A DNA stretch of 64,000 nucleotides. Origin: Macrostomum hystrix. Taxonomy: Eukaryota; Animalia; Platyhelminthes. Below, piece after piece: positions 4,587-44,900 of the stretch. The stretch covers positions 7,564,001 through 7,628,000 of the forward strand of contig CATNEN010000007.1 in the NCBI GenBank assembly GCA_950097015.1. The letters are read 5' to 3'. Each line of letters begins with the position of its first letter. Position 1 is the stretch's first letter. The position numbers and the translations under genes were made by a program. Below the pieces are notes generated by a model. It saw only the letters and a list, made by a program, of their open reading frames with translations, did not search any database and was not told where the DNA came from.

Positions 4587-4962
4587 CCTTTCCAACATTT
4601 TTTAGCTTTAACTATGAATTTTAGATAAAGTAGAATTTTCACGGGGCTCTGAATCTAGAAACTGAAGAGACGACTCCACGCCAAACCTCCGCTTTCCAAG
4701 TGTTCTCAAATGCTTTTGGTCAAGGCTAACTGACTGACTGTGTTACACAATTGTTCATGTAAATTATTTGTATGCCAATTGTATTAAATAAACAGGAAAT
4801 TCGGTTTTCTAGCTAAAATGTCTTATTCGATTCTATTTATTGTGTGGATGCTTGATGGCTTGAATCAGGTGATAAAATTATGTTTAAATTTAGAGTAAAT
4901 AAGCGAATTATGCTACTGCCAACTTCTATCCAGTAGTATATGATGAATTTGTCTCATTGCAG

Positions 4963-7900
4963 ACTCAAATCGCCGCCGAAAGCGACGAGAGCGAGTCGCC
5001 AGATGAGGCGCCGCTTCTACGTGGCCAGCAATCGGTTACTACCTCGACATCATCGGCGACGCCTGCAACTAACAACGGTAACGCCGACGAGTTGCCGCGC
5101 CGTCGACGGCGCCGTCGCCGACGTCGGAAGACAGCGAAGGCTTCAAAAAACGGCGATGCGGGTGAATCGTCGACAACGGCGACAGCTTCGGCATCGTCGC
5201 CGCCAATCGGTTCGCTGCCGCGCCTGGGCCGGCCGCCGAAGAGGTCGGCTGCCTCCTTGCTGCCAGCCCAGAGCGCGCGCCGGCTCGAATTCGACTCGGA
5301 CGGTGAGGCGCACGAAGTTGACGCGGACGCGCCATTCGGTGTCGAGTCGGCGCAACGACTCAGCGACCAACGGCACAGTTACAAGCGTCGCGGTTGCGTA
5401 GCAATTGGCGAGGTCGCCGAGACGTCGCAATCGCCGTCGCCGAAGCGTCGCCGCGTCTATTTCGGCGACGGCGACGACCGAGAAGCGGCTGAAAAACGAC
5501 GCCAGCTGACATACAACGAGGCTACGAGTTGTTCGGCGCTGCTGCAATGCAACGACGAGAATGCGCTGGCTCTTGACGGCAAGAACCTGCTGAGCCACCC
5601 GGACTGCCTGCCGTTTCGCGTTGCCATGGACTACGGCTGGCTCTACCAGCTTCCGGCTGCGGCTGCTCAGGGAAATGCTGCAAGTGCTCAGAGAAATGGC
5701 GTTGCTATTGCTGCAGCTAAGCCTGCGCAAGCTTTAGGAAGTGCATTTTCTGTCTACAAAGCTGCTACTAACACCGGAAGTGCAACCCAAGCTAAAGCTA
5801 GTCAATCGGCAGCCACCAATGCAGGAAGTGCAACTCAGACCAACAAATCTGCCGCTACCAATTCAGGAAGTGCAACTCAGACCAACAAATCTGCCGCTAC
5901 CAATTCAGGAAGTGCAACTCAGACCAACAAATCTGCCGCTACCAATGCAGGCAGTGCAACTCAAACCAACAAATCTGCCGCTACCAATGCAGGAATTGCA
6001 ACTCAGCCCAACAAATCTGCCGCCACCAATGCAGGCAGTGCAACTCAAACCAACAAATCTGCCGCTACCAATGCAGGCAGTGCAACTCAAACCAACAAAT
6101 CTGCCGCTACCAATGCAGGAATTGCAACTCAGCCCAACAAATCTGCCGCCACCAATGCAGGAAGTGCAACTCAAACCAACAAATCTGCCGCTACCAATGC
6201 AGGCAGTGCAACTCAAACCAACAAATCTGCCGCTACCAATGCAGGAATTGCAACTCAGCCCAACAAATCTGCCGCCACCAATGCAGGCAGTGCAACTCAA
6301 ACCAACAAATCTGCCGCTACCAATGAAGGCAGTGCAACTCAAACCAACAAATCTGCCGCTACCAATGCAGGCAGTGCAACTCAAACCAACAAATCTGCCG
6401 CTACCAATGCAGGAATTGCAACTCAGACCAACAAATCTGCCGCTACCAATGCAGGCAGTGCAACTCAAACCAACAAATCTGCCGCTACCAATGCAGGCAG
6501 TGCAACTCAAACCAACAAATCTGCCGCTACCAATGCAGGAATTGCAACTCAGACCAACAAATCTGCCGCTACCAATGCAGGCAGTGCAACTCAAACCAAC
6601 AAATCTGCCGCTACCAATGCAGGCAGTGCAACTCAAACCAACAAGTTTGCCGCTACCAACACCGGAAGTACAGCCCAAAGCAAAGAAACGAGCATCGCCA
6701 TAAGTACATTCAAAGGCGCATCAAATGGGGCCAACGTGGCCGGGTCCGCCTCTGATGCCCTACTCACTCTTGTCCAGTCGCTGAGTGCCGATAGTCAGCG
6801 CCAGTTTGCCAGAATTCACGCGCAGTTGGAGCGGCAGCAGCGACAGTTGAACCGCATCTGCTCCAGCTTGGAGGGTGTCCAGGCGCCGGCCTCATCACCA
6901 ACGACGGCTCGTCCTACTCCGAAGTCGCCGACGGCGTGCATTCGGCCGCGCCGTCAGCCCCCGCCACCTCCGCTCCCGCCGCCTCCACCCCCGGCCATAG
7001 ACTGGGAGGCGTACAGGGACTGCGCCAGCCAACCAATGCGCTACCTGCCGCTGAAGGTGCCAGACCAGCTGCAGCCTGGCGCTGTCCTTCTGTTTAAGGT
7101 GCGTGAGCTGTTATATATACCCTGGCCCGTTGCTATCGACTCGATTTGCTGGAGTAGATAACCGAATTCTTTGCTATGGATTTGAATGACTGAAGTATGA
7201 AAAGGAATTTCGTTGCTATGGACTCGATTGCTTGATTAGTGTAGAAACATTAATTCCGTTGCTATGGACTCGATTGCTTGATTAGTGTAGAAACATGAAT
7301 TCCATTGCTATGGACTCGATTGCTTGATTAGTGTTGAAACAGAATTCCGTTGCTATGGACTCGATTGCTTGATTAGTGTAGAAACATGAATTCCATTGCT
7401 ATGGACTCGATTGCTTGATTAGTGTTGAAACAGAATTCCGTTGCTATGGACTCGATTGCTTGATTAGTGTTGAAACAGAATTCCGTTGCTATGGACTCGA
7501 TTGCTTGATTAGTGTTGAAACAGAATTCTGTTGCTATGGACTCGATTGCTTGATTAGTGTTGAAACAGAATTCCGTTGCTATGGACTCAATTGCTTGATT
7601 AGTGTAGAAACATGAATTCCATTGCTATGGACTCGATTGCTTGATTAGTGTTGAAACAGAATTCTGTTGCTATGGACTCGATTGCTTGATTAGTGTTGAA
7701 ACAGAATTCTGTTGCTATGGACTCGATTGCTTGATTAGTGTTGAAACAGAATTCCGTTGCTATGGACTCGATTGCTTGATTCGATTAGAAACGTGAATTC
7801 CGCTGCTATGGACTCGATTGCTTGATTAGTGTAGAAACATGAATTCCGTTGCTATGGACTCGATTGCTTGATTAGTGTTGAAACAGAATTCCGTTGCTAT

Positions 7901-13089: not shown

Positions 13090-13350
13090 CTGACCGAATT
13101 AGTGACTATGACCAAATGGGACTATCATGACCGAATTGGACCATGACCGAATAGGACCATGACCGAATAGGACCATGACCGAATAGGACCATGACCGAAT
13201 AGGACTATGACTGAATAGGACCATGACCGAATAGGACTATGACCGATTAGGACCATGACCGAATATGACCATGACCGAATAGGACCATGACCGAATAGGA
13301 CCATGACCGATTAGGACCATGACCGAATTGGCCTATGGTCGAATGGGACT
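13090..13350. repeat. 16-bp minisatellite
   Basis: Unit GACCATGACCGAATAG. Confidence 0.93.
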
Positions 13351-14005
13351 GCCTGAATTATATTAATAGGGCAATGACAGTATCGAAAGCAATAATGACC
13401 AAAATTGCCGAATGCAATTATGACATAAAAGCAGTCGACCTTTGAAGTCACAAAGTTCCAATGGACACAGTAAAGCAAAAGAGCAAAAGAGTGAAAAAAA
13501 TACAGATTTCAAGATCGTCTGATATTTTCAACTCTGGTCCGCCACCCCCACCCCACCGTGAACTTGAGATCGCATTACCAACTTCGGAAGGTGTCAAATT
13601 TTCAAATCTCATGCAAAGGCAATGAACACCTGACTTGCCATCTGTCTTAAAAAATGTTTCAAGTTAAAGGTGAAATTAATCTCGTAAAAAATCAGTTAAA
13701 AATCTGGATCGAAGCGGTTCGGTCAGTGCGTTGCGTCGAATTACCTGGGGTATGAGTCCAGCTAGCGGGCAAGCTCAGTTCCAGAATTTGATACACCAAA
13801 GACACCGCCGAGCACCTGTTGTCCATCTGCAACTGAAAGTTGTCACATTGCGCGTAGGCGAATTGGACCGACTGTCTATAAGTCTGCTGCATTTTTCACC
13901 GGGTTACAATGCTCAGGCAGACTCTTCAGTTTGAGTTGTACTCATTGGCTCTCACTGGCTCTCATCTCTCTGAAGTGTTGCTAAACATTCAGATTGACAG
14001 CTGTC

Positions 14006-17000
14006 ATGCCGCGGCAGCTCCCTACGGCAGCAATTCTGCTGCTGCTCAGCCTAGCTACTGGTGAGTTGCCATGCTGATTTGCCACTGCTCTAAGCCTCTC
14101 ATAGGTTCTTTGTTTGGAAAAACTGCTTGGAACGACAAGCTATCGAATAGAACAGTAAAAAATTTTTGCCTTCAGGAGGTTTTAGCCAGTGGTTAGAGCG
14201 TCGGACGCACGACTTTAAGGTCGTGGGTTCGATTCCCGAGTCCACTGAAACAAGTTGTGTCCTTTAGCAAGACACCTAACTCTGCATTGCTTCAGTTCAC
14301 CCAGCCGTTAAATGGTTACTAGCATTGGCTGGGGTAATTTAGGGTGGGTGTGGCGTCCGCCCAGTCCATGGACTGAACAGCTGTACGCAGCCTTCAGATG
14401 CTCTGTCGGCTGCACCTCTGGCACTGCTGAAGCAGGTGTAATAGTTATTATAATAATTAAATTATGTAAAAAAATTAATTTCCTGCAGCTCACGCCAGGG
14501 CAGTCGGAGGCGGATCAGACAGCCAGGACCAGGACCTCCAGATATTCAGCGACGGCCAGGCCTCTCAGCAGTCTCAGAGTCAGCAGTCCAGCGATATTCA
14601 ACAGCTGATTGGCGAATGGAAGGCGGTGACGAATGAGGCTCAGGTTGACAGCCTGGGCCTAGGCGAGCTGCTTGGAGAGACTCAGATCCGGCAAGCGGCG
14701 AAGCGGCGACTCAAACCTGGCCAGAAGGGGGAGAGTGACGTGCAAGCAAGCAGTGCAAATCAAAGCACAGCTGGCAAAGAACTGCCGTCAGAAACCATCC
14801 GCACCAGGACCACGTCAAAGACAAAGACGACCGAAAACCTGACTGTACCGTTAAAACCAAACAGCAACAAAATGCAAAGCAAAAATTCAAAAACAAAAAA
14901 CCGAAAACCCAAAAAAAACTCAAAAAAGAGAGTCATTAAAAAGGCAACAATCAAGTCGGTAAAAAAACAAATCACGCCACCACAACAAAGAAAGCAGAAA
15001 ACCAAGCGTGCAGCAGACAAATTGAAGAAGCTGAGAAGACGAATCAGCAGACGTGTCAGACGTGCCCGACGAAACGGCAAGCGACGTACAAGACGATCTA
15101 GACGCAGTGCCAAGAAGCTGAGAAGACGAGTCAGCAGACGCGTCAGACGTGCCCGACGAAACGGCAAGCGACGTACAAGACGTTCCAGACGCAGTGCCAA
15201 GAAGCTGAGAAGACGAGTCAACAGACGCGTCAGACGTGCCCGTCGAAACGGCAAGCGAAGCACTAGACGTTCCAGACGCAGTGCCAAGAAGCTGAGAAGA
15301 CGAGTCAGCAGACGCGTCAGACGTGCCCGACGAAACGGCAAGCGACGTACAAGACGTTCCAGACGCAGTGCCAAGAAGCTGAGAAGACGAGTCAGCAGAC
15401 GCGTCAGACGTGCCCGACGAAACGGCAAGCGACGTACAAGACGTTCCAGACGCAGTGCCAAGAAGCTGAGAAGACGAGTCAGCAGACGCGTCAGACGTGC
15501 CCGACGAAACGGCAAGCGAAGCACTAGACGTTCCAGACGCAGTGCCAAGAAGCTGAGAAGACGAGTCAGCAGACGCGTCAGACGTGCCCTACGAAACGGC
15601 AAGCGAAGCACTAGACGTTCCAGACGCAGTGCCAAGAAGCTGAGAAGACGAGTCAGCAGACGCGTCAGACGTGCCCGACGAAACGGCAAGCGACGTACAA
15701 GACGTTCCAGACGCAGTGCCAAGAAGCTGAGAAGACGAGTCAGCAGACGCGTCAGACGTGCCCGACGAAACGGCAAGCGAAGCACTAGACGTTCCAGACG
15801 CAGTGCCAAGAAGCTGAGAAGACGAGTCAGCAGACGCGTCAGACGTGCCCGACGAAACGGCAAGCGACGTACAAGACGTTCCAGACGCAGTGCCAAGAAG
15901 CTGAGAAGACGAGTCAGCAGACGCGTCAGACGTGCCCGACGAAACGGCAAGCGAAGCACTAGACGTTCCAGACGCAGTGCCAAGAAGCTGAGAAGACGAG
16001 TCAGCAGACGCGTCAGACGTGCCCTACGAAACGGCAAGCGAAGCACTAGACGTTCCAGACGCAGTGCCAAGAAGCTGAGAAGACGAGTCAGCAGACGCGT
16101 CAGACGTGCCCGACGAAACGGCAAGCGACGTACAAGACGTTCCAGACGCAGTGCCAAGAAGCTGAGAAGACGAGTCAGCAGACGCGTCAGACGTGCCCGA
16201 CGAAACGGCAAGCGAAGCACTAGACGTTCCAGACGCAGTGCCAAGAAGCTGAGAAGACGAGTCAGCAGACGCGTCAGACGTGCCCGACGAAACGGCAAGC
16301 GACGTACAAGACGTTCCAGACGCAGTGCCAAGAAGCTGAGAAGACGAGTCAGCAGACGCGTCAGACGTGCCCGACGAAACGGCAAGCGAAGCACTAGACG
16401 TTCCAGACGCAGTGCCAAGAAGCTGAGAAGACGAGTCAGCAGACGCGTCAGACGTGCCCGACGAAACGGCAAGCGAAGCACTAGACGTTCCAGACGCAGT
16501 GCCAAGAAGCTGAGAAGACGAGTCAGCAGACGCGTCAGACGTGCCCGACGAAACGGCAAGCGACGTACAAGACGTTCCAGACGCAGTGCCAAGAAGCTGA
16601 GAAGACGAGTCAGCAGACGCGTCAGACGTGCCCGACGAAACGGCAAGCGACGTACAAGACGATCTAGACGCAGTGCCAAGAAGCTGAGAAGACGAGTCAG
16701 CAGACGCGTCAGACGTGCCCGACGAAACGGCAAGCGACGTACAAGACGTTCCAGACGCAGTGCCAAGAAGCTGAGAAGACGAGTCAGCAGACGCGTCAGA
16801 CGTGCCCGACGAAACGGCAAGCGAAGCACTAGACGTTCCAGACGCAGTGCCAAGAAGCTGAGAAGACGAGTCAGCAGACGCGTCAGACGTGCCCGACGAA
16901 ACGGCAAGCGACGTACAAGACGTTCCAGACGCAGTGCCAAGAAGCTGAGAAGACGAGTCAGCAGACGCGTCAGACGTGCCCGACGAAACGGCAAGCGAAG

Positions 17001-18246
17001 CACTAGACGTTCCAGACGCAGTGCCAAGAAGCTGAGAAGACGAGTCAGCAGACGCGTCAGACGTGCCCTACGAAACGGCAAGCGAAGCACTAGACGTTCC
17101 AGACGCAGTGCCAAGAAGCTGAGAAGACGAGTCAGCAGACGCGTCAGACGTGCCCGACGAAACGGCAAGCGACGTACAAGACGTTCCAGACGCAGTGCCA
17201 AGAAGCTGAGAAGACGAGTCAGCAGACGCGTCAGACCTGCCCGACGAAACGGCAAGCGAAGCACTAGACGTTCCAGACGCAGTGCCAAGAAGCTGAGAAG
17301 ACGAGTCAGCAGACGCGTCAGACGTGCCCGACGAAACGGCAAGCGAAGCACTAGACGTTCCAGACGCAGTGCCAAGAAGCTGAGAAGACGAGTCAGCAGA
17401 CGCGTCAGACGTGCCCTACGAAACGGCAAGCGAAGCACTAGACGTTCCAGACGCAGTGCCAAGAAGCTGAGAAGACGAGTCAGCAGACGCGTCAGACGTG
17501 CCCGACGAAACGGCAAGCGACGTACAAGACGTTCCAGACGCAGTGCCAAGAAGCTGAGAAGACGAGTCAGCAGACGCGTCAGACGTGCCCTACGAAACGG
17601 CAAGCGAAGCACTAGACGTTCCAGACGCAGTGCCAAGAAGCTGAGAAGACGAGTCAGCAGACGCGTCAGACGTGCCCGACGAAACGGCAAGCGACGTACA
17701 AGACGTTCCAGACGCAGTGCCAAGAAGCTGAGAAGACGAGTCAGCAGACGCGTCAGACGTGCCCGACGAAACGGCAAGCGAAGCACTAGACGTTCCAGAC
17801 GCAGTGCCAAGAAGCTGAGAAGACGAGTCAGCAGACGCGTCAGACGTGCCCGACGAAACGGCAAGCGACGTACAAGACGTTCCAGACGCAGTGCCAAGAA
17901 GCTGAGAAGACGAGTCAGCAGACGCGTCAGACGTGCCCGACGAAACGGCAAGCGAAGCACTAGACGTTCCAGACGCAGTGCCAAGAAGCTGAGAAGACGA
18001 GTCAGCAGACGCGTCAGACGTGCCCGACGAAACGGCAAGCGACGTACAAGACGTTCCAGACGCAGTGCCAAGAAGCTGAGAAGACGAGTCAGCAGACGCG
18101 TCAGACGTGCCCTACGAAACGGCAAGCGAAGCACTAGACGTTCCAGACGCAGTGCCAAGAAGCTGAGAAAACGAGTCAGTCGTGCTTCACATATTCAGAC
18201 TGGAGTTCTTAGGAATTCTTTGCCCAAGTCAGACTTTGTGCAGTAG
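14006..18246 (+). CDS. Secreted Arg/Lys-rich tandem-repeat protein (~1270 aa), cluster gene A
   Basis: Exon 14006-14060 (MPRQLPTAAILLLLSLAT-G|GTGAGT) splices in phase 1 to 14489-18246 (AHARA-VGGGSDSQDQ...), in frame with the 1206-aa ORF. Signal peptide, Gln/acidic segment, Lys-rich linker, 36 x KKLRRRVSRRVRRARRNGKRRTRRSRRSA, ends DFVQ*. TATAAG at 13877. Confidence 0.85.
14175..14410 (+). mobile_element. tRNA-derived SINE with CORE-like domain (family 1) in intron of gene A
   Basis: A-box TAGCCAGTGG and B-box GGTTCGATTCC, followed by GTGTCCTTTAGCAAGACACCTAACTCTGCATTGCTTCAGTTCACCCAGCCGTTAAATGG resembling the MIR/CORE consensus. A second copy lies at 27445-27660 (-). Confidence 0.85.
15025..18180 (+). 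repeat. 87-bp coding tandem repeat, 36 full copies plus partial
   Basis: First unit start 15025, last 18157; difference = 36 x 87. Confidence 0.97.
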
Positions 18247-19148
18247 ATAGCTTTGTGGTTGACTGCAGTGGACTAATTTGGTTCTGGCATTTTTATTAAT
18301 TGGGTTTTGGCTTTGATGTGATTTACAGTTATTATTTTATGTTGTGATTTTAGGTTTTGTAGATGTTACAACAAAAATAGCATATTAACACTTTTGGTTT
18401 TGTTTCTTGACGTGTGATTTATTTTGTGACATTTGGATTTGGACTGTAACAAAATTCATGATATTTTTATTTGAAGTTCCCGAAACAGCGGATAAAATAA
18501 AATTTATCTCTACTTGTTGCAAGTTAATTCAGGCTTTTCCAGTGGGGAAGTCTTGGTCTATTGAAGCTTTTCATGTTTTAACTGAGCACAATGGAAGGAT
18601 GGGAAATCGAAAAGATCCTGTTCACGCCGAAATTCCTCTCCGAAGAAAAGCAAGACCTCGGACGTAATTTTTAGGCCTTAGTCAACAGATGCGGTGCAAA
18701 GCCGAGGTAATTTTTACAGTAAACCCATGACATTGTCAGGTTTATGCGTTAAAGCTAATATCAAACGATGTTTATATCATATAATGAGCATATGCTTTAC
18801 ATTTGTGAGTAATGAGATCATTACTGATTAATTTTCGTTCATTCCAAGCACTTTAAAGTGCATTGCGACCAACGCCAACGCAGTGACTCTATTTGAAAAG
18901 TGTGTTTCACGTCCAAATCACTTCGATTTGCACTTTTAACCTTCTGCCCAAAGCTGGCCTCGCAAAGATCAATTTTGAACAATCGCTTGAAATCTAAATT
19001 TTAAGAATGACCAACAGATGGTCAGAGGGCCCGTTACACTTTTCAGTAAAATCTGTTTTTTTAGGATCCGGTAACGCAAGTTCGCCGAGCACCTCCCACG
19101 GCTGCTTTACTCACTTGATCTTCTGTGCTAGAAAGGTTCAAAATATTT

Positions 19149-19156
19149 TATAAATA
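19149..19156 (+). promoter_or_regulatory. TATA box of cluster gene B
   Basis: TATAAATA ~100 bp upstream of ATG 19251; similarly placed TATA boxes precede the other three cluster genes. Confidence 0.55.
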
Positions 19157-19250
19157 GAAGCAACTCGCTTTGGCTTCAAGATAGTGGAGAATTTCCGGAT
19201 AATATTTTTCGCAGCTCAGATTAAAATCAATTAAAAGGCTTGCAGCTGAA

Positions 19251-20816
19251 ATGCGAGCTGTCTGTCCCACCTTCTTGCTGATTATCTTGACCGTGCAGCT
19301 GCTCGGTGAGTCAGTGCTTCTAGCCATCTTTCAGCACTAGCGAAAGTCCGGATGCTAATTAATTATCGCGCGGCAAGGTCCCTAAGTAGCAAGCACCTCT
19401 CCCATGCATTTCAGGCCACTGTAGAGCGGCGCCAGCAGCTTCGACTGGCAATCTGATCAACGATCAGGCTGCAAAACTCCCTTCGAAGCAGCAGCAGCAG
19501 ACACAACAGCAGCCAAAACAGCAGCAGCCAAAACAGCAGCCACAGCAGCAGTCACAACAGCAGCCAAAACAGCAGCCACAGCAGCAGTCACAACAGCAGC
19601 CAAAACAGCAGCCACAGCAGCAGCCGAAACAGCAGTCACAGCAGCAGCCAAAACAGCAGTCACAGCAGCAGCCAAAACAGCAGCCAAAACAGCAGCCACA
19701 GCAGCAGTCACAGCAGCAGCCGAAACAGCAGCCAAAACAGCAGCCACAGCAGCAGTCACAGCAGCAGCCAAAACAGCAGCCAAAACAGCAGCCACAGCAG
19801 CAGCCGAAACAGCAGTCACAGCAGCAGCCAAAACAGCAGTCACAGCAGCAGCCAAAACAGCAGCCAAAACAGCAGCCAAAACAGCGCAGGACAAGCCCGT
19901 ACTCGTAGCGGGCGCCAACGGAAGAAGATGGGCAGCCAAGAAGATGCTTGCCAGAACTATTTTGGGGCAAAGATTAAATAAAGATAGCGGCGAGCGAAGC
20001 AGCAGGAAAAGAAATAGACTCCGAATTGGCAGCGGGCGACGAAGAAGCGGAAAAGGGAGCGGCAAGAGGAGCGGCAAGAGGAGCGGCAAGAGGAGCGGCA
20101 AGAGGAGCGGCAAGAGAAGCGGCAAGCGAAGAGGCGAGAGAAAAAACAGGCGCCGAAGTGGCCGACGAAGAAGCTGGAGAAGAAACGGCAAGAAGAGAGG
20201 CAGGAAGAGTAGCAAGAGAAGCGGCACGCGAAGCGGCAAGAGGACCGGCAAAAAGAGCGGCAGGAGGAGCGGCAAGAGAAGCGGCAAGAGGACCGGCAAA
20301 AAGAGCGGCAGGAGGAGCGGCAAGAGAAGCGGCAAGAGGAGCGGCAAGCGAAGGGGAAAGAGAAGCGGCACGCGAAGTGGCAAGAGGAGCGGCAAGAAGA
20401 GCGGCAAGAGGAGCGGCATGATAAGCGGCAAGCAAAGAGGCGAGAGAAGAAACAGGCGCCGAAGTGGCCGACGAAGAAGCTGGAGAAGAAACGGCAAGAA
20501 AAGAGGCAGGAAGAGTAGCAAGAGAAGCGGCACGCGAAGCGGCAAGAGGAGAGGCAAGCGAAGCGGTAAGCGAAGCAGCTGGCTAAGCAACAGGCAAAGC
20601 AGCTGGCGAAGCAACAGACGAAGCAGCTGGTGAAGCAGCTGGCGAAGCAACAGGCGAAGCAGCTGGCGAAGCAACAGGCGAAGCAGCTGGCGAAGCAAGA
20701 GACGAAGCAGCTGGCGAAGCAACAGGCGAAGCAGCTGGCGAAGCAACAGGCGAAGCAGCTGGCGAAGCAACAGACAAAGCAGTTGGCGACGAAACCGCAA
20801 GAGAGGCGGGAAATGA
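19251..20816 (+). CDS. Secreted Gln/Pro/Lys-rich plus RSGK/SSWRSNRR-repeat protein, cluster gene B (frame break ~19900 and internal TGA 20631; possibly pseudogene or assembly error)
   Basis: Exon 19251-19305 (MRAVCPTFLLIILTVQLL-G|GTGAGT), phase 1 to acceptor TTTCAG|19415 giving GHCRA-APAA...QQPKQQPQQQSQ..., stop TAG 19906-19908. The basic repeats (RSGK, RRNGKKR, cf. gene A RRNGKRR) lie in another frame and run to TGA 20814-20816. Confidence 0.7.
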
Positions 20817-21061
20817 AGCTCGCTAAAGTGGCTATCGAGTGTCGCAGGAATCATGCCTGACTCTTGTCTAAGTGATTTGTGACTACCTTGGTGCAGGGTT
20901 TCCAAGAAAAATCGGTGGTAGCTTTTTCCTAACACCTTTTTCGACTATATTGTTAACTCATGGATACGAGAATGAATATTTTTTGTTTCCTCAACATTTG
21001 AGACGATAAATATATTGATTACGATATTCGGTTATTGAGCAGCGCATTTAAATGCAGTGTA

Positions 21062-21160
21062 CAACTGTTCAGTCCGTGGACAGGGGTGCCGCCACACTCA
21101 TGTACCGAAGTCGCCACACCCAACCAAGCATCTGCCCAGCTGATGCTGGTACCGATTTTA
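21062..21160 (-). mobile_element. 3' fragment of SINE family 1
   Basis: CTGTTCAGTCCGTGGAC...GCCACACCC...CCCAGCTGATGCTGGTACC matches 27464-27530. Confidence 0.65.
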
Positions 21161-21300
21161 CAGAATCAAACTGATAAAACAAACTAATCAATCCTCGATA
21201 TACTACTGCTTATGCACAGAACATATTACTTATTTTACCATATACATTTAGCTTACTAAAAATCCTGATTCCGGTTCCATACAAGGCAATGTTGATTATA

Positions 21301-22070
21301 TTCTACCCAGAATGATCATAGTCTACCCAGAATGATCATAGTCTACCCAGAATGATCATAGTTTACCCAGAATGATCATAGTCTACCCAGAATGATCATA
21401 GTTTACCCAGAATGATCATAGTCTACCCAGAATGATTATAGCCTACCCAGAATGATCATAGTCTACCCAGAATGATCATAGCCTACCCAGAATGATCATA
21501 GTCTACCCAGAATGATCATAGTCTACCCAGAATGATCATAGTCTACCCAGAATGATCATAGTCTACCCAGAATGATCATAGCCTACCCAGAATGATCATA
21601 GTCTACCCAGAATGATCATAGTCTACCCAGAATGATCATAGTCTACCCAGAATGATCATAGTCTACCCAGAATGATCATAGTCTACCCAGAATGATCATA
21701 GTCTACCCAGAATGATCATAGTTTACCCAGAATGATCATAGTCTACCCAGAATGATCATAGCCTACCCAGAATGATCATAGTCTACCCAGAATGATCATA
21801 GCCTACCCAGAATGATCATAGTCTGCCCAGAATGATCATAGTCTACCCAGAATGATCATAGTCTACCTAGAATGATTATAGTCTACCCAGAATGATCATA
21901 GTCTACCCAGAATGATCATAGCCTACCCAGAATGATCATAGTCTGCCCAGAATGATCATAGTCTACCCAGAATGATCATAGTCTACCCAGAATGATCATA
22001 GTCTACCCAGAATGATCATAGTCTACCCAGAATGATCATAGTCTACCCAGAATGATCATAGTCTACGCAG
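21301..22070. repeat. 20-bp minisatellite
   Basis: Unit GTCTACCCAGAATGATCATA. Confidence 0.97.
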
Positions 22071-22254
22071 AAAAGCAGTTTTCTTAAATAATTTTTTGCG
22101 TTTTGGTTTTCAGTCCAAAAAAAAGTTAGTCTTTGAGTGCGGTTATATCGAGCGCTATCGTGAGTTTGATGACTCAAATGAATCCATATGGGGGAACAGT
22201 CTGTCTACAGTCTGATCGATGGCATAAGCCAGTTTAAACAATACTAAAAAGCTG

Positions 22255-22260
22255 TATAAA
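22255..22260 (+). promoter_or_regulatory. TATA box of cluster gene C
   Basis: TATAAA ~125 bp upstream of ATG 22381. Confidence 0.5.
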
Positions 22261-22380
22261 TTGTAAATCTATTTATAGCTGAGCTCAGTGAAGCCATGGA
22301 GACAGCTTTTGGGTACTTCTGTCCGGTGAAGCCGCTGGAATCACCGCTCAGAGTCAACGCACCTGCTGGGTTGCTCAATA

Positions 22381-24162
22381 ATGAGGCTTCTCTTCTGTTG
22401 CACAATTCTGCTGGTCGCTGCGGCCCTGAAGTTTGGTAAGGCTGCACTAAATCAGACTGTCAATGACTCGTAAAATACAGAGATTCCTGGGCGTTCAGTG
22501 TACTGGGAGCACACTGAGATTACACTGAGATTACACTGAGATAACACTGAGATAACAATGAGATTACACTGAGATAACACTAAGATCACACTGAGATCAC
22601 ACTGAGATTACACTGAGATAACACTAAGATCACACTGAGATTACACTAAGATCACACTGAGATTACACTGAGATCACACTGATACCACACTGAGATTACA
22701 CTGAGATTACACTGAGATAACAATGAGATCACACTGAGATAACACTGAGATCACACTGAGATAACACTGAGATAACACTAAGATCACACTGAGATTACAC
22801 TAAGATCACACTGAGATTACACTGAGATCACACTGAGATTACACTGAGATAACACTAAGATCACACTGAGATCACACTGAGATTACACTGAGATAACACT
22901 AAGATCACACTGAGATTACACTGAGATCACACTGAGATTACACTGAGATCACACTGAGATTACACTGAGATTACACTGAGATTACACTGAGATTACACTG
23001 AGATCACACTGAGACAACAATGAGATCACACTGAGATTACACTGAGATTACACTGAGATTACACTGAGATTACACTGAGATTACACTGAGATCACACTGA
23101 GACAACAATGAGATCACACTGAGATTACACTGAGATTACACTGAGATTACACTGAGATCACACTGAGATCACACTGAGATCACACTGAGATTACACTGAG
23201 ATTACACTGAGATCACACTGAGACAACAATGAGATCACACTGAGATTACACTGAGATCACACTGAGATAACAATGAGATTACACTGAGATTACACTGAGA
23301 TTACACTGAGATCACACTGAGATCACACTGAGATAACAATGAGATTACACTGAGATTACACTGAGATTACACTGAGATCACACTGAGATAACAATGAGAT
23401 TACACTGAGATTACACTAAGATTACACTGAGATTACACTGAGATTACACTAAGATCACACTGAGATTACACTGAGATCACACTGATACCACACTGAGATT
23501 ACACTGAGATTACACTGAGATCACACTGAGATTACACTGAGATAACAATGAGATCACACTGAGATAACACTGAGATAACACTAAGATCACACTGAGATTA
23601 CACTGAGATCACACTGAGATTACACTGAGATCACACTGAGATTACACTGAGATAACACTAAGATCACACTGAGATTACACTGAGATCACACTGATACCAC
23701 ACTGAGATAACAATGAGATCACACTGAGATTACACTGAGATCACACTGAGATTACACTGAGATCACACTGATATCACACTGAGATCACACTGAGATCACA
23801 CTGAGATCACACTGAGATCACACTGATATCACACTGAGATTACACTGAGATCACACTGAGATCACACTGAGATCACACTGAGATCACACTGAGATCACAC
23901 TGAGATCACACTGAGTCTCTCTTCTATTTCAGATGTATGCGCAGCCGCCCCGGCCACCAGACCTCCTGAATGCGGCGCCGCGGTTGCCTTGACTAACATG
24001 CAGCAGCCGTGGAAGTCTCACCACAGGCGGATCGAGCTCGAGCAGGTTTTGAAGCAATTCAGACACGGAAATCAACGGAGAACGCCCAAGATGCCCCACT
24101 GGACTACATGGCCGCAATCCGCAGGTCCTCGGTACAGAGTCAGGTCGATGATACTTCAATAG
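22381..24162 (+). CDS. Small secreted basic peptide precursor (94 aa, MRLL...MILQ*), cluster gene C
   Basis: Exon 22381-22435 (MRLLFCCTILLVAAALKF-G|GTAAGG), phase 1 to TTCTATTTCAG|23933-24162: DVCAAAPATRPPECGAAVALTNMQQPWKSHHRRIELEQVLKQFRHGNQRRTPKMPHWTTWPQSAGPRYRVRSMILQ*. AATAAA at 24232. Absent from the ORF track. Confidence 0.85.
22509..23915. repeat. 11-bp minisatellite filling the intron of gene C
   Basis: Unit ACACTGAGAT(T/C/A); ends ~17 nt before the acceptor AG. Confidence 0.97.
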
Positions 24163-24419
24163 AGAGCCATGATAATGAACAGATTTAACTGGCTGCATCT
24201 GAGTAAACATTTCGCTTTTCGGTTGTAAGGAAATAAATATTTTTATAATGCTTACTATTGAAATTTTATTGAGGCGAAGCACATTAGTACTAATTAGTTT
24301 GTATTCAGGAACACGATGTTCTAAGATGGTCTGGGCCTATTAAGTGATGTTAAGCAGGTGACTGTGATAAAACTAAAGCAGCAGTGTTTTCTGTACCTAC
24401 TGCTAGTTACCTCAGGCAG

Positions 24420-24772
24420 TAGTTAATTGTCGCCATAGGTAACTGTCGCCATAGGTAACTGTCGCCGTAGGTAACTGTCGCTGTAGTTAACTGTCGCCAT
24501 AGGTAACTGTCGCCATAGGTAACTGTCGCCGTAGGTAACTGTCGCTGTAGTTAACTGTCGCCATAGGTAACTGTCGCCATAGGTAACTGTCGCCGTAGGT
24601 AACTGTCGCCATAGTTAACTGTCGCCATAGGTAACTGTCGCCATAAGTAACTTTCGCCTTAGGTAACTGTCGCCATTGGTAACTGTCGCCATAGGTAAGT
24701 TTCGCCATAAGTAAGTTTCGCCATAGGTAACTGTCGCCGTAGGTAACTGTCGTCATAGGTAACTGTCGCCGT
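24420..24772. repeat. 16-bp minisatellite
   Basis: Unit AACTGTCGCCATAGGT. Confidence 0.95.
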
Positions 24773-25080
24773 TAAATTAACTAGTAACAATAAACTGCGT
24801 GCACTTTAAGACCAAAATGTGTCAAATCATATTGCTCCTCGCTGCAAAAAAATTCTTTCCTACGATTTTTTTGAAATATCATATTTCTCATCTCAAATGT
24901 CATAGTTTCTCTCATTTTGTGGAAAATTAGCACCAAGGCGTGAAATATTAATTTCTTTCGGCTTTCTTATGGTAAGAAAACTTTTCAACAGTCTGAAATT
25001 GCTCAAATTAATCAAAATCTGAGTGGGCTTGCCACTCGACATTGCGAAGGGCTGAAAAATAAATTGCTGAAAGAATCTAG

Positions 25081-25086
25081 TATAAA
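25081..25086 (+). promoter_or_regulatory. TATA box of cluster gene D
   Basis: TATAAA 83 bp upstream of ATG 25164. Confidence 0.55.
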
Positions 25087-25163
25087 TGGTAAGCGTTAAA
25101 AACTCCTGTGTTAAGGATAACTTCATTTTACTGGTTTATACTTATTCCAATTCGCCTTAGGAA

Positions 25164-25571
25164 ATGAGGCTTCTCTGTGCTGCTTTTCTATTCATTGCCG
25201 TTGTCATGGTAATGGGTGAGTAAGGATTTGTAAGTGAGTGAGTGAGTGAGTGAGTGAGTGAGTGAGTGAGTGAGTGAGTGAGTGAGTGAGTGAGTGAGTG
25301 AGTGAGTGAGTGAGTGAGTGAGTGAGTGAGTTAGTGAGTGAGTGATGTGATGATTTGCACTACTCTAGTTTCAGATGAGGCGGCTGCATCGCCAACCGTC
25401 AGCCCAGCCAACCAGGCCGCATCGGCTTCGCCAAAGGCGGGCCAAGCCCTGGCCAACCTGCTGGCCAAGCTGAGGCGGCTGCTGCCGAGGCTGAAGCAGT
25501 CTGAAACGAACACCGAGCCCGAGCCGGAGATGCGCCTGCTCAGCGCTGATGAGGCCATGATCCTCCAGTAG
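25164..25571 (+). CDS. Small secreted peptide precursor (82 aa, MRLL...MILQ*) with amphipathic cationic helix, cluster gene D
   Basis: Exon 25164-25215 (MRLLCAAFLFIAVVMVM-G|GTGAGT), phase 1 to TTTCAG|25375-25571: DEAAASPTVSPANQAASASPKAGQALANLLAKLRRLLPRLKQSETNTEPEPEMRLLSADEAMILQ*. Confidence 0.85.
25233..25345. repeat. (GAGT)n microsatellite in intron of gene D
   Basis: Direct reading. Confidence 0.95.
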
Positions 25572-25951
25572 AGTCAATGGGTCAGCTCAAAATCCATGAT
25601 AAAATGCAAGCTTAGAAAGTGATCTCAATTTTCTATTTATGTTTGACAAATTTATAATTTCTATTTCTATTCTAAAAACTGCGGTGAAGGTGCGGATAGT
25701 TGCAAAAAAATTAATAACTTGTAAGACGGACGAAAAATTGAATGCCTTCAACTTTGAGAGTTAAAAAAATTATTTTTCAACCATTGCAATAATAGATTAT
25801 AATTAAATCAAAATTTATTTTAAATACAAGATTCATAGTGTGAGCAAATAATTTCGCGTGGTAGATTTTTAGTGCGTTAATAGCTTTAGGTAATATTAGA
25901 CTGATGGAAAAATTTGTATACGAAGTAGGACCTACTTTAAGTTGTACGTCG

Positions 25952-26111
25952 GTCAGAAGGAGTACATCATGGCAGCCCTGTGTACACAGGATCAGTCAGA
26001 AGGAGTACATCATGGCAGCCCTGTGTACACAGGATCAGTCAGAAGGAGTACATCATGGCAGCCCTGTGTACACAGGATCAGTCAGAAGGAGTACATCATG
26101 GCAGCCCTGTG
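25952..26111. repeat. 43-bp tandem repeat overlapping the glycosyltransferase stop codon
   Basis: Unit GTCAGAAGGAGTACATCATGGCAGCCCTGTGTACACAGGATCA at 25952, 25995, 26038, 26081 (partial). Confidence 0.93.
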
Positions 26112-28151
26112 CAGCCTATGCCAGGTGCTTGACTGCAGTCCATTGTGCCGGTCAACCATGAAGATGTTGTTGACGATGGCCCTGCCTGTATGGCTGGGCA
26201 GTAGGTCGGCCCACAGGTTGCCGGGGACGGTGGGCTGTTGCGGCAGGCCGAGGCGGTGGGCCAGGATGCCGAGTATGTAGACGTCATCAATCCAGAGGGG
26301 CCTGGAGAACACTGAGCACCAGTAGAGCAGCTGGACCAGCGTCGGCTTGATGATGTAGGCATAGCCTTCGCAATACTTCGGGAACTTGTCGTCCGGGAAC
26401 TCCTGGCGGGTCAGGAACCATTTGTCTGCGGGCTCTCGCTCCGGCTTGCCGCCCTGCACCTTGCAGCAGAGGCCGGCCCCGGGCTGGAAGGCGCCTAGGA
26501 AAGCGTCCAGGTGGAAGACGTCAACAAACACATCGTCGTCCAGTTTGACCAGCCAGTCGGCGGACTGGCAGAACTCGGCCAGCCAGTCAAACAGGCCGAG
26601 ATGCTTCACCGTCATGTTGCGGTAGGTGTCGGCGAAGTCGCGCTGGACAATGTCCCGATGCCTGGCGGCCTCCGCCGTCACCGCCGCCTGCCGAGAGTCG
26701 GCATCCGGGCCCACAGGCCGGCCCAGGAAGAAGGCGAGCAGCAGCCGGCGGCCGCGGACGTAGCGCACGCTGCCCCAAGTCTGGCGAATCACCCGCCTCC
26801 TATCGGCATGGTCGACGGCCGAATGGACAGCCAGGACGATGGAGACCCGCCCGGTGCAGGGGCCGAAGTTCTCCAGATAGGGGAAGTCAACGAAGCCGAT
26901 GGGAGCCCGCGGCGGCTGCTGCGTCGACTGCAGCGACGGCTGCTCTGTGTCGTTGCTAGGGACGCTGCAGCGGGCCTCGAGCATCTGATACTGAGGCGAG
27001 TCGGGTCCGCCGTTTGGAAAATGGCGCCTCACCTGAAGTAGGGGTTTATTGAGGTTTCGGGACCTTCAGCACCAGCCTGTGGCACAGCGGCTGCCATTGC
27101 GCATCTCTTTCAAAGGATGTGTACAGCTGTTCTGTCCATAGACTTCAGGACAACTAAACGGTATTCATTCATTTCAGGAATTAATAGTCATGCTCACGGA
27201 CACAAATTCACGGACCCTGTTCCCGAATCCGCGGCGAGGCCTCAGGACCGATCGCAAGGCACTGAGAGTGTACACAGCCTGATGAGGAGAAAGTCTGGGC
27301 AGATGTGTGTGTGTGAGTGTGTGTGAGTGTGTGTGTACGAGTATGTGTGTGTGTGTGTGTGGGTGTGTGAATAATAGTTAAATAATAGTTTATTACACCT
27401 GCCCCAATCGGGCCACATGTGCAGCGGCAGCTATTGCGCGGCGTATCTGAAGGCTACATACGGCTGTTCAGTCCATGGACTGGGGGACGCCACACCCACC
27501 TTCAATTACCCCAGCTGATGCCGGTACCCATTTAACAGCTGGGTGAACTGAAGCAATGCAGAGTCAGATGTCTTGCTAAACGACACAAATTGTTCCAGGT
27601 TAACCGGAAATTAAACCCCCGACTTTCAAGTCGTGAGGCCGACGCTCTGACCACAAGGCAAGAACCTCCAGTGCTTAGGGGTCAGCGGAATGGGCAGAAT
27701 CGCCTCTTCGCTGGCTGCGGGTCCGAAATGATTTTCCTGCAACCCGCGGCCTGTTGTGATTATTATTTCTATCAATGATTCTCAGAGACACAATGAGTAG
27801 CTGCAGGCGAACCTTGGCCCAGTAGGAATTGCTCAGCTGCTGCAGCAGGCGCGAGTTGCTCGAATTGCCTTCGCCAGCTGACTTCGTGGGCACCGGCGGC
27901 GTCTCCAGCAGCAGCCGTCGGTACGCAGACGAATCGCCTGTTGACGGCGAAGTCAACTGGGCGAGGCGACGCGATCTCGCCGAAGCAGAGAACGAAGGCG
28001 AGGTCAGGAGGAGCAGCAGCGCGGACACCAGCAGCGTGGCGAAGCCCGCTTGGGCCAGTCGCCAGCGAAGTCGCCGACGATGCGACCAGAAGACGGCCGC
28101 GACTGCGACGGCGGTGCGCGAGTCGAAGAACTCCGCGCCTGACGGCGGCAT
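26082..28151 (-). CDS. GT31 beta-1,3-galactosyltransferase-like type II membrane glycosyltransferase
   Basis: Exons 28151-27813 (ATG; TM AGFATLLVSALLLLL; AAG|GTTCGC) and 27032-26082, phase 0. Motifs RRVIRQTWG, DIVQRDFADTYRNMTVK, KLDDDVFV (DxD), FPKYCEGYAY, WIDDVYILG. Confidence 0.93.
27200..27330 (+). mobile_element. Degenerate SINE-like element (family 2)
   Basis: CGAATCCGCGGCGAGGCC...GTGTACACAGCCT..GAGAAAGTC shared with 55430-55570. Confidence 0.5.
27445..27660 (-). mobile_element. tRNA-derived CORE-like SINE (family 1) in glycosyltransferase intron
   Basis: Reverse complement aligns over ~215 bp with 14180-14400. Confidence 0.85.
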
Positions 28152-41926: not shown

Positions 41927-44900
41927 TAGCAGCTCTATACAAACATTGTGCGAGCGGGGGGCGGACATGGTCCACAGCAGAGCAATACTGTGTTAGCACT
42001 TTGCGTTTAGCTAACAAAATAGGGAGTCGGGAACACGACTGTCGGGTAAAAGAAGCCTAGTTGGGGACGGCGTTGGCTGGGATCTCAACAGGCGCCAATA
42101 GTTCTCAGCTGTGCTAGGGCAAAAACTGCTAATTGCACGCCTACTGCTGATCCTATTCACGCTGCTGGATCTGGGTGTCTGTCTGTTCTGGGTGTCTGTC
42201 TGTTCTGGGTGCCTGTCTGTTCTGGGTGCCTGCCTGATCTGGGTGCCTGCCTGATCTGGTTGTCTGCCTGTTCTGGGTGTCTGTCTGTTCTGGGTGTCTG
42301 TCTGTTCTAGGTGTCTGTCTGTTCTGGGTGCCTGCCTGATCTGGTTGTCTGCCTGTTCTGGGTGTCTGTCTGTTCTGGGTGCCTGCCTGTTCTGGGTGCC
42401 TGCCTGATCTGGGTGTCTGCCTGTTCTGGGTGCCTGCCTGATCTAGGTGTCTGTCTGTTCTGGGTGCCTGCCTGATCTGGGTGTCTGCCTGTTCTGGGTG
42501 TCTGTCTGTTCTGGGTGTCTGTCTGTTCTGGGTGTCTGCCTGTTCTGGGTGTCTGCCTGTTCTGGGTGTCTGTCTGTTCTGGGTGTCTGTCTGTTGTGGG
42601 TGTCTGCCTGTTCTGGGTGCCTGCCTGTTCTGGGTGTCTGTCTGTTCTGGGTGTCTGTCTGTTCTGGGTGTCTGCCTGTTCTGGGTGTCTGCCTGTTCTG
42701 GGTGTCTGTCTGTTCTGGGTGTCTGTCTGTTCTGGGTGTCTGTCTGTTCTGGGTGTCTGTCTGTTCTGGGTGCCTGCCTGTTCTGGGTGTCTGCCTGTTC
42801 TGGGTGTCTGTCTGTTCTGGGTGTCTGTCTGTTCTGGGTGTCTGCCTGTTCTGGGTGCCTGGCTGATCTGGTTGTCTGCCTGTTCTGGGTGTCTGTCTGT
42901 TCTGGGTGTCTGTCTGTTCTGGGTGCCTGCCTGATCTGGGTGTCTGCCTGTTCTGGGTGCCTGCCTGATCTGGGTGTCTGTCTGTTCTGGGTGCCTGCCT
43001 GATCTGGGTGTCTGCCTGTTCTGGGTGTCTGTCTGTTCTGGGTGTCTGTCTGTTCTGGGTGTCTGCCTGTTCTGGGTGTCTGTCTGTTGTGGGTGTCTGT
43101 CTGTTGTGGGTGTCCGTCTGTCTGTCTGTCTGTTCAGGTTACTGTATTTTTCAAAGGCTTAGAAATCTGAAATCAAGCCAGAGTGAAGGAAAGGTTGAGC
43201 AGACAGTTTGAGCATGCTTCAAATCGATAGGCAATAAATTTTTACAAGGCCATTGGTTCGACCTGCAGTCACTTCAAAATGAAAAAAGACCAATAATTCT
43301 CCCCCCCAATCGAGTGGATCTGCGAGCAGAAACGGAAAGAAATACTATCCTACGTTCATTTTATTCTCCCGGGAACTTTCTCGGCATTCCTGGGACATGC
43401 GCATGTCTTTGTTCGTCTTGACACAATATTCCCACCTTCCAGGCCTCTCCATTCTCTCACTCACCTCGGCGCCTCGGCCCTCCAATAGCGGCTCCTTCCA
43501 CTTGGCCTGGATGAAGGCGTCGGCGTGGTACAGCTCCTTGAGCGTGTCGATCTCGCCGATCTTCAGGAACACCACGCGAATTTCCACGACGACCTTTTCG
43601 TGGAATCAGAAATTAGTTTAAGTTAATTGGGGGCCAAGCTGTTCCTAAGAATACCCCTCTCACACTGTCTTACAGCTGGTGTCACTGTCGCTCTGTCCCT
43701 CCATCATTCTGTCACTCGATCATTCTGTCACTCGATCATTCTGTCACTCATTCACTCTGTTACTCTGTGACTCCTCCACTCTGTCACTCTGTCACTCTGT
43801 CACTCATTCACTCTGTCACTCTGTCACTCATTCACTCTGTCACTCTGTCACTCTGTCACTCTGTCACTCTGTCACTCTGTCACTCATTGACTCATTCACT
43901 CTGTCACTCATTCACTCTGTCACTCTGTCACTCTGTCACTCATTCACTCTGTCACTCTGTCACTCTGTCACTCTGTCACTCATTCACTCTGTCACTCTGT
44001 CACTCATTCACTCTGTCACTCTGTCACTCATTCACTCTGTCACTCTGTCACTCATTCACTCTGTCACTCTGTCACTCATTCACTCTGTCACTCTGTCACT
44101 CATTCACTCTGTCACTCTGTCACTCATTCACTCTGTCACTCTGTCACTCATTCACTCTGTCACTCTGTCACTCATTCACTCTGTCACTCTGTCACTCATT
44201 CACTCTGTCACTCTGTCACTCATTCACTCTGTCACTCTGTCACTCATTCACTCTGTCACTCTGTCACTCTGTCACTCATTCACTCTGTCACTCCTTGAGA
44301 CACGGCCGGTCTCTGTCTCTCTGTACTCAGCAATAATTATTCTACCGCTTCGCCGAAAGAGATACGGAGGAACGGCAGAAAAGTCTGCTAGCAAACTTAT
44401 TAGAACAAAATGATATGCAAGAACCGGATGCTCAATATGCTCAAAAACCAATATTTGCTTGGCCAAAAACTCTTCATCTCCCGCAAAAACCGAGGGAAAT
44501 TTTTTCCTTCAAAAGACCCACGCCGACATCAAAAGGCCTACTGGCGCTGTTGTTGGGAATAGAATTGACAACCCAAATCCTCATCGCGACCTCGACTCCC
44601 GTCCACAGTATATTTGCAATTGGGAAGAAAGAATGAGGACAGTCTCGCAGCACAGGAATAGGATTCCAGGATTATCATCTCCCACTTGAGCTTCAGCCCA
44701 CGGACTGAGCATATTAGATAGGCAAATTACGATTAAACAAACAGAATATGCGGCATCGGGTCAACTTAAACCCCAACTATTGGTTTGCTTTTCAAACGGA
44801 TTGTTTTGCTGAAATTCTCCGACCGAAATCCAGAAAATTTTGCAGCTTCTACAGCAATGTGAATTGTATGGCTGCAATGTATTGTAATTGTGCGTGTTGT

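Follow-up and report, generated by a model that had tools for sequence, protein, structure and literature searches.

We analysed a 64,000-nucleotide (nt) stretch of the genome of the flatworm Macrostomum hystrix (contig CATNEN010000007.1, positions 7,564,001 to 7,628,000; hereafter the window, with positions counted from its first letter), in which four consecutive genes lie on the plus strand within 11 kb. The region 13700-26200 was read and each exon was translated singly. The four reading frames begin at ATGs at positions 14006 (gene 1), 19251 (gene 2), 22381 (gene 3) and 25164 (gene 4), and a TATA box is found 128, 102, 126 and 83 nt before the respective ATG. In each gene, a first exon with a coding part of 55, 55, 55 and 52 nt (18, 18, 18 and 17 codons plus one G) is followed by a phase-1 GT..AG intron and by one coding exon, open in phase over 1251, 163, 75 and 64 codons. 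The donors read GTGAGT, GTGAGT, GTAAGG and GTGAGT; the acceptor CAG ends at 14488, 19414, 23932 and 25374, each time after a pyrimidine tract; and an AATAAA or ATTAAA, recognised from the sequence alone, lies 250, 69, 70 and 231 nt past the stop. Apart from the AATAAA/ATTAAA elements, this anatomy is the one that an earlier sequence-only reading of the window had proposed. Its central description also holds: the genes are tightly clustered on one strand, are TATA-driven and consist of two exons, and their products bear signal peptides but lack domains.

The first exons of all four genes encode hydrophobic peptides devoid of acidic residues. The cleavage-site strings that they complete across the junction are AHARA, GHCRA, DVCAA and DEAAA, with split codons for Ala, Gly, Asp and Asp, again as had been read from the sequence. 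Judged by rule (basic start, hydrophobic core, small residues at -3/-1), the N-termini look like ordinary cleaved signal peptides, and such a signal-like first exon is the evidence of secretion found in each of the four. Both strands of the window were then scanned for an ATG that opens a hydrophobic, acid-free peptide with a GTRAG donor 36-120 nt downstream. With a strict threshold, only genes 1, 3 and 4 were retrieved; a loose threshold added gene 2, a minisatellite artefact at 44868 and a minus-strand candidate at 45678. Order-2 Markov sequences of equal composition gave 0.13 (strict) and 0.93 (loose) starts per window. Compared with this expectation, four phase-1 signal-like exons on one strand in 11 kb are therefore not due to chance.

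Gene 1 is the member of the cluster for which spliced RNA was found, and it comprises the following features:

13806..13817, plus strand: 12-nt upstream motif CGCCGAGCACCT, ending 61 nt before the TATA box
13878..13883, plus strand: TATA box, TATAAG
14006..14060, plus strand: coding part of exon 1, 18 predicted signal-peptide codons and a G, within spliced contigs
14061..14488, plus strand: phase-1 intron of 428 nt, GT..AG, skipped in contigs of runs X4 and X5
14489..18246, plus strand: coding part of exon 2, 1251 codons and a stop, ending FVQ-stop
15025..18179, plus strand: tandem array of an 87-bp (29-residue) unit, 35 full units
18496..18501, plus strand: candidate polyadenylation (poly(A)) signal AATAAA

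Seven RNA runs were found, and their contigs were compared with positions 13330-15600. Spliced contigs from two of the runs reproduce the predicted junction 14060/14489 exactly and free of mismatches: a 733-nt contig of run X4 joins 13924-14059/60 to 14488/9-15084, also with 0 mismatches, and a 630-nt contig of run X5 carries the identical joint. These spliced contigs establish that the runs are RNA and that gene 1 is transcribed from ~40-46 nt past its TATA box. The X4 contig, on which a spliced leader is absent, starts at 13924, 46 nt downstream of the box, and RNA contigs give zero cover over 13330-13861. Across the intron, RNA cover is confined to a dispersed repeat at 14188-14401 that resembles a short interspersed nuclear element (SINE), and the unique parts of the intron are uncovered. 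Gene 1 is thus expressed and spliced as the sequence-only reading had predicted, and the spliced RNA also fixes its plus sense. Long minus-strand open reading frames (ORFs) over genes 1 and 2 (1132 and 492 residues) were rejected as composition artefacts of the purine-rich plus strands. As for the SINE-like element itself, it carries a B-box of transfer RNA type, and hundreds of RNA contigs of 88-95% identity stack on it to a depth in the thousands; neither ARAGORN nor Rfam gave a call over it.

The predicted gene 1 precursor, of ~1,270 residues, has an extreme composition. At its N-terminus, a positively charged start precedes a hydrophobic core of 13 residues, and the residues at -3/-1, across the junction, are small. 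Exon 2 encodes 528 Arg (42%) and 138 Lys, so that Lys and Arg make up 666 of 1251 residues, together with 17 acidic residues and 0 Cys, for a net charge of +649. It opens with ~70 Gln-, Ser- and Asp-rich residues (net -7), continues with ~108 Lys-rich residues and the Arg-rich array, and closes with a 21-residue tail. The 35 full 29-residue units of the array follow one another at exact 87-bp spacing and represent just 7 DNA variants, showing that the array is either very young or homogenised. Within the unit, the scarce hydrophobic residues occupy positions 2, 5, 9, 13 and 16, which fall on one helical face (hydrophobic moment 0.76). For four units, AlphaFold2 predicts one continuous helix (pLDDT, its per-residue confidence score, of 93), AlphaFold helices being unreliable for highly charged repeats. 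Elsewhere in the genome, a 301-codon stop-free frame on contig 25 (3,239,114-3,239,572, minus strand) is 37% identical to the Arg-rich repeat of gene 1 and may represent a further gene of this repeat type.

Such a sequence could also encode a defence or offence polyprotein, from which furin-type convertases would release Arg-rich helical peptides, the acidic N-terminal piece acting as a neutralising propiece; the released peptides would condense nucleic acids and membranes, and in this way either kill microbes or prey or gain entry to cells. The product indeed contains 117 RX[KR]R motifs and 347 dibasic positions, an acidic start precedes the cationic body, the unit is amphipathic, and a preprint describes killing by repeat peptides of positive charge as a general strategy (bioRxiv 10.1101/2023.03.09.531820). 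However, cuts at every basic pair would leave almost solely free Arg and Lys and di- or tripeptides, and neither a spacer nor a repeated cleavage context defines a peptide within the array. Moreover, its hydrophobic content is far under that of typical membrane-active peptides, and a propiece of net -7 cannot neutralise a body of +649. A polyprotein of this type is thus quite unlikely.

The Arg content of 42% and the Arg-Ser and Arg-Thr motifs are also reminiscent of sperm nuclear basic proteins, and the predicted helix would be compatible with DNA binding. Gene 1 would then encode a protamine-like nuclear or sperm chromatin protein, its hydrophobic first exon not being used as a signal peptide. 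Yet in the sole transcript form observed, the hydrophobic exon is spliced in frame onto the array, and the N-terminus is laid out like a cleaved signal peptide, first positive, then hydrophobic, then small at -3/-1. In addition, protamines are small, are made in spermatids and lack a signal peptide, unlike a product of 1,270 residues with an acidic N-terminal piece. We consider a chromatin protein very improbable.

Gene 2 shares the 12-nt upstream motif with gene 1 and is predicted as follows:

19083..19094, plus strand: 12-nt motif CGCCGAGCACCT, ending 55 nt before the TATA box
19149..19156, plus strand: TATA box
19251..19305, plus strand: predicted coding part of exon 1, 18 codons and a G
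19306..19414, plus strand: predicted phase-1 intron of 109 nt, with GTGAGT, a pyrimidine tract and CAG
19415..19908, plus strand: coding part of exon 2, 163 codons, ending PYS-stop

The second exon of gene 2 is 52% Gln, with regularly placed Pro and Lys and a net charge of +21, and its AATAAA stands at 19977. Past its stop, the plus strand holds two further repetitive frames, one at 19944-20633 (Gly/Lys/Arg/Ser repeats, 229 residues from an ATG) and one at 20570-20860 (Lys/Gln/Leu/Ala repeats, 96 residues), both without a signal exon and without a poly(A) signal. These frames may represent a cationic-repeat exon in decay, a portion of gene 2 that escaped recognition, or only a purine-rich minisatellite. 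By composition they recall the 'GRK/SRK' regions of ap1-like proteins (PMC8621496), as would the reading of any purine-rich minisatellite. A longer, 402-codon gene 2 frame (19425-20633) was rejected: such a model would depend on a poor acceptor (19467) and run past the AATAAA at 19977, and its end is not followed by a poly(A) signal.

The features of genes 3 and 4, whose predicted introns contain short repeats, are as follows:

22255..22262, plus strand: gene 3 TATA box, in a context, GTATAAAT.GTAA, that also occurs at gene 4
22381..22435, plus strand: gene 3, coding part of exon 1, 18 codons and a G
22436..23932, plus strand: gene 3, predicted phase-1 intron of 1497 nt, nearly all of it an 11-bp x 128 minisatellite
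23933..24162, plus strand: gene 3, coding part of exon 2, 75 codons, ending MILQ-stop
25081..25088, plus strand: gene 4 TATA box
25164..25215, plus strand: gene 4, coding part of exon 1, 17 codons and a G
25216..25374, plus strand: gene 4, predicted phase-1 intron of 159 nt, holding (AGTG)29
25375..25571, plus strand: gene 4, coding part of exon 2, 64 codons, ending MILQ-stop

Exon 2 of gene 3 has a net charge of +9 and two Cys, and is followed by an AATAAA at 24232. The mature part of gene 4 is neutral (7 Lys and Arg versus 7 Asp and Glu, net 0, isoelectric point 6.5) and is predicted to form an amphipathic helix over residues 19-45. The generalisation that the products of the cluster are cationic thus applies to genes 1, 2 and 3 (net +649, +21 and +9), but not to gene 4. 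Genes 3 and 4 were also compared with neuropeptide or prohormone precursors, which combine a signal peptide with conserved peptides flanked by dibasic sites, often with a Gly ahead of the site for amidation. Two dibasic sites are present in gene 3 and one in gene 4, in neither case with a Gly-basic amidation site, and the C-terminal MILQ is the sole conserved part. The RNA runs that hold gene 1 also contain 0.33-0.37 of the sampled 31-mers of 23933-25600. The calculated share is 0.34 if precisely gene 3 exon 2 with its untranslated region and both gene 4 exons are transcribed, and ~0.17-0.18 if only one of the two genes is. The observed share therefore agrees, albeit indirectly, with expression of both genes 3 and 4.

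Kinship among the four genes was examined by 5' and 3' local alignments against shuffles, shared k-mers and low-stringency blastn of whole gene regions, and none of these revealed extended similarity between any two of them. Genes 3 and 4 nevertheless share three short collinear strings, in the TATA context, in the ATG region and at the 3' coding end. At the ATG, 14 nt are identical at equal position (the base before it and the first 13 coding nt), a match whose chance was estimated at <= ~1e-5 with common signal-peptide starts allowed for. At the other end, the last four codons, the stop and the following AG (MILQ-stop-AG) match with three synonymous third-position differences. Genes 3 and 4 thus look like old, diverged paralogues conserved just at their ends, that is, in the first four codons and the C-terminal MILQ. 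Between genes 1 and 2, the common element is CGCCGAGCACCT. This 12-mer has 39 occurrences in the genome, but the composite of CGCCGAGCACCT, 40-80 nt and TATAAR is found only at genes 1 and 2 in the 220-Mb genome, suggesting a shared control element, as far as a single motif noticed post hoc can do so. Across promoter, signal peptide, intron, mature part and 3' end, no link between the 1/2 pair and the 3/4 pair was found beyond the layout and the Gln-stop ending of gene 1.

These comparisons bear directly on the proposal, made in the sequence-only reading, that all four genes go back to a single secretory ancestor, having been duplicated in tandem and diverged rapidly, and that they are regulated together in one gland. 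The genes do lie on the same strand in an 11-kb span, exon 1 measures 55 nt in three of the four, and the intron phase is equal throughout. The products end in FVQ, PYS, ILQ and ILQ, so that three of them close, as had been pointed out, with two hydrophobic residues and Gln before the stop. Short position-specific strings exist within pair 3/4 and within pair 1/2, and the runs that contain gene 1 transcripts apparently also contain those of genes 3 and 4. The layout itself, however, is generic: phase-1 introns are generally over-represented around signal-peptide cleavage sites in animal secreted-protein genes, where the intron likewise splits a small-residue codon at or next to the site, a general property that does not define a family (PMC1626468). 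The shared architecture is thus real, but it is no proof of kinship. The terminal G of exon 1 is equally uninformative because G is the donor consensus, and the Gln-stop of gene 1 versus genes 3 and 4 is a lone post-hoc coincidence. With no similarity between pair 1/2 and pair 3/4, and with gene 4 not cationic, descent of all four from one gene is unlikely in our view. Position-specific identities exist only for genes 3 and 4, genes 1 and 2 having one 12-nt motif in common. The four genes are better described as neighbours with a shared generic layout that are not demonstrably one family, so that the earlier generalisations on family and charge were partly right.

Relatives of the four genes were searched for in several collections. 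The exon products of genes 1-4 have no Pfam match (for gene 1, the scan covered the unique N-terminal part and seven repeat units), in agreement with the lack of a recognisable domain noted from the sequence, and Rfam returned nothing relevant. In the M. hystrix genome, genes 1, 3 and 4 were not found a second time, and the matches of gene 2 and of the gene 1 repeat were limited to low-complexity DNA. Large protein collections contained no homologue of gene 4 exon 2 or of the unique N-terminal part of gene 1, and the ESM Atlas none of gene 1 or gene 3. The sole HMMER match of gene 3 exon 2 (P0001), a 355-residue ORF with a five-fold repeat, had an E-value inflated by repetition and was dismissed as chance. 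The lack of a detectable relative for genes 1-4 fits fast-evolving or young secretory genes. That standard annotation would miss the locus, as the sequence-only reading assumed, is doubtful given that RNA-Seq and Iso-Seq informed the published annotation of M. hystrix (PMC10468722); positional and adult/hatchling RNA-Seq of the species also exist (PMC10468722).

The flanking genes are ordinary and include a Cupin_8/JmjC gene, retroelement RNase H fragments and a galactosyltransferase. The latter (PF01762, E 3e-39) is a single-exon gene at 26082-27032 on the minus strand, directly downstream of gene 4 and opposite to it; that a Golgi glycosylation enzyme adjoins a secretory cluster may be a coincidence. 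The window is dense in minisatellites, with ~50 arrays of periods of 11-90 bp, many of them 0.5-3 kb long. Arrays are present, among other places, in both introns of the 3/4 pair and in the spacers that separate gene 2 from gene 3 and gene 3 from gene 4. Because such arrays create many long spurious ORFs on both strands, an ORF alone is weak evidence in this window. A 734-codon open frame at 4957-7161 on the plus strand, for instance, contains ~20 copies of a 14-residue Ala/Thr/Ser/Asn-rich unit, encoded by a 42-bp array at 5804-6659; Pfam was null over its first 281 residues.

Altogether, we regard as probable, with restrained confidence, that the locus is a four-gene cluster of lineage-restricted (orphan) M. 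hystrix secreted-protein genes whose products are components of a gland secretion, gene 1 encoding a polycation. The sequence anatomy of the four genes is shown, as are the transcription and exact splicing of gene 1. Each gene would combine its own TATA promoter with a first exon that codes for little beyond a signal peptide, a phase-1 intron at the cleavage site and one exon for a domain-less mature product, and the products, whose function we infer, would enter the secretory pathway to become components of an exocrine gland secretion. The gene 1 product would be a stand-alone polycation consisting of an acidic Gln-rich piece, a Lys-rich linker and 35 Arg-rich 29-residue units. It would most likely act by charge, condensing or bridging polyanions such as sulfated or acidic glycans, the glycocalyx and possibly nucleic acid or polyphosphate. 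The gene 2 product would be a Gln/Pro/Lys repeat protein of a composition typical of transglutaminase substrates, and genes 3 and 4 would provide a diverged paralogue pair of small secreted peptides.

Besides the caution attached to the helix model, several points weigh against this reading. The signal peptides of genes 1-4 are predictions that rest on rule-based judgement, and the junctions 19305/19415, 22435/23933 and 25215/25375 of genes 2-4 are likewise predicted. With its 117 furin-type motifs, the gene 1 product might not survive the secretory pathway intact, and the open frame of a homogeneous array is not itself evidence of constraint. More generally, no orthologue was found for genes 1-4, so that selection is not measurable. 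Past the stop of gene 2, open frames in both other phases are unexplained by the short gene model. Finally, the 5' untranslated region of gene 3 may contain an upstream ATG. This ATG (22296-22298) is out of frame, has a strong Kozak-like context and lies 85 nt before the gene 3 start. It stands ~11 nt past the expected start site of the gene 3 transcript, or upstream of the start site if a TATA-like sequence at 22270 is used; if the transcript begins earlier, it opens a 47-codon upstream ORF that overlaps the gene 3 signal exon.

In a rival reading, gene 1 would be the only functional gene, models 2-4 being chance or decayed frames in minisatellite-rich DNA, or non-coding transcripts. The ~50 arrays of the window do yield many long spurious ORFs, the junctions of models 2-4 rest on sequence signals, gene 3 has its upstream ATG, the low-complexity CAG-type sequence of gene 2 matches many loci, and none of the genes has a homologue. 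However, each model brings together six independent signals, correctly ordered and spaced: a TATA box; a leader that lacks ATGs (except in gene 3); a hydrophobic exon; a donor that fits the consensus; an acceptor CAG that follows a pyrimidine tract and leads into an open in-phase frame; and, 69-231 nt past the stop, a poly(A) signal. The k-mer share in RNA, moreover, fits expression of genes 3 and 4, and their MILQ ending is retained through synonymous changes. That gene 1 alone is functional thus appears improbable.

Physicochemical parallels to the cluster are found among secreted materials whose function resides in bulk properties and not in a fold. Coacervate cements combine polybasic and polyacidic proteins, as in the sandcastle-worm cement, and Gln/Lys-rich transglutaminase substrates include involucrin, rodent seminal vesicle proteins and the mosquito mating-plug protein. 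Like the cluster products, as predicted, these proteins are secreted, repetitive, and either extreme in charge or rich in Gln and Lys. There is no sequence relationship to the cluster genes and the parallel is one of analogy only, by which a Gln/Lys-rich gene 2 product next to gene 1 would fit a cross-linkable matrix.

Within the genus, gene 1 is best compared with Mlig-ap1, the cohesive protein of the duo-gland adhesive of Macrostomum lignano, which has Lys/Arg-rich 'KR' or 'GRK' regions (PMC6410801, PMC8621496). Lys/Arg-rich repeats account for >3,600 residues of Mlig-ap1, with a calculated isoelectric point above 14; its function is blocked by heparin-like polyanions, and its release by free cations or a basic peptide (PMC6410801). 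Both proteins are very long, repetitive, low-complexity and extremely basic, with a signal peptide (predicted in gene 1), no homologue outside their group and a proposed charge-based action on polyanionic partners, and in both cases short-read assemblies break within the repeats. In contrast to Mlig-ap1, which exceeds 5,000 residues and is built on Gly/Lys/Arg or Ser/Arg/Lys repeats, gene 1 is complete in two exons and has a stop of its own, and its repeat is an Arg-dominated 29-residue unit, predicted to be helical. The core of Mlig-ap1 (C-type lectin, vWD, C8, TIL and EGF domains) was absent from the scanned parts of gene 1, and none of these domains turned up in the scanned flanking ORFs. 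Gene 1 is therefore not a member of the ap1 family, having no lectin/vWD/EGF core, and by analogy it could still share the mode of action.

A second parallel is provided by Mlig-pro1-76, putative seminal fluid proteins of Macrostomum limited to the prostate (PMC5977470), and by the fast-evolving tail-region transcripts of the genus (PMC7336406, PMC10468722). These proteins are likewise short to medium in length, secreted and mostly without homologue, they are enriched in signal peptides, and they turn over fast, with few orthogroups shared across species. Their membership, however, is defined by prostate or tail expression, and no similarity of genes 1-4 to any database protein was found. A further proposal, to which we attach a small probability, is that gene 1 yields an intact secreted polyarginine polymer (~1,250 residues, net +649) used as a free polycation, be it as a cohesive or condensing agent or as a component of the ejaculate. 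The latter role is conceivable because M. hystrix inseminates hypodermically, and repeats resembling cell-penetrating peptides could help sperm or seminal factors through tissue.

The window thus holds a real, compact cluster of orphan secreted-protein genes, whose verified member, the near-polyarginine and predicted secreted gene 1, is unusual. If the products were trivial or untranslated, the cluster would be merely another set of orphan transcripts. If the reading as a secreted polycation is true, the gene 1 product would rank with the most highly charged secreted proteins on record, and it would lend itself naturally to the question of how a chain of this kind passes the membrane of the endoplasmic reticulum and escapes furin. 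The current model of reversible flatworm adhesion gives a central place to repetitive secreted proteins of extreme basicity, and the role of their basic regions continues to be described as enigmatic (PMC8621496). For the study of charge-driven cohesion, coacervation and release, a single-copy gene that is small and complete and encodes a near-pure polycation would be much more tractable than Mlig-ap1, with its >5,000 residues. As a whole, the cluster would offer a compact example of orphan secretory genes that arise and diverge side by side in a minisatellite-rich genome, and as such it bears on 'homology detection failure' and on the fast turnover reported for the reproduction-related genes of Macrostomum.

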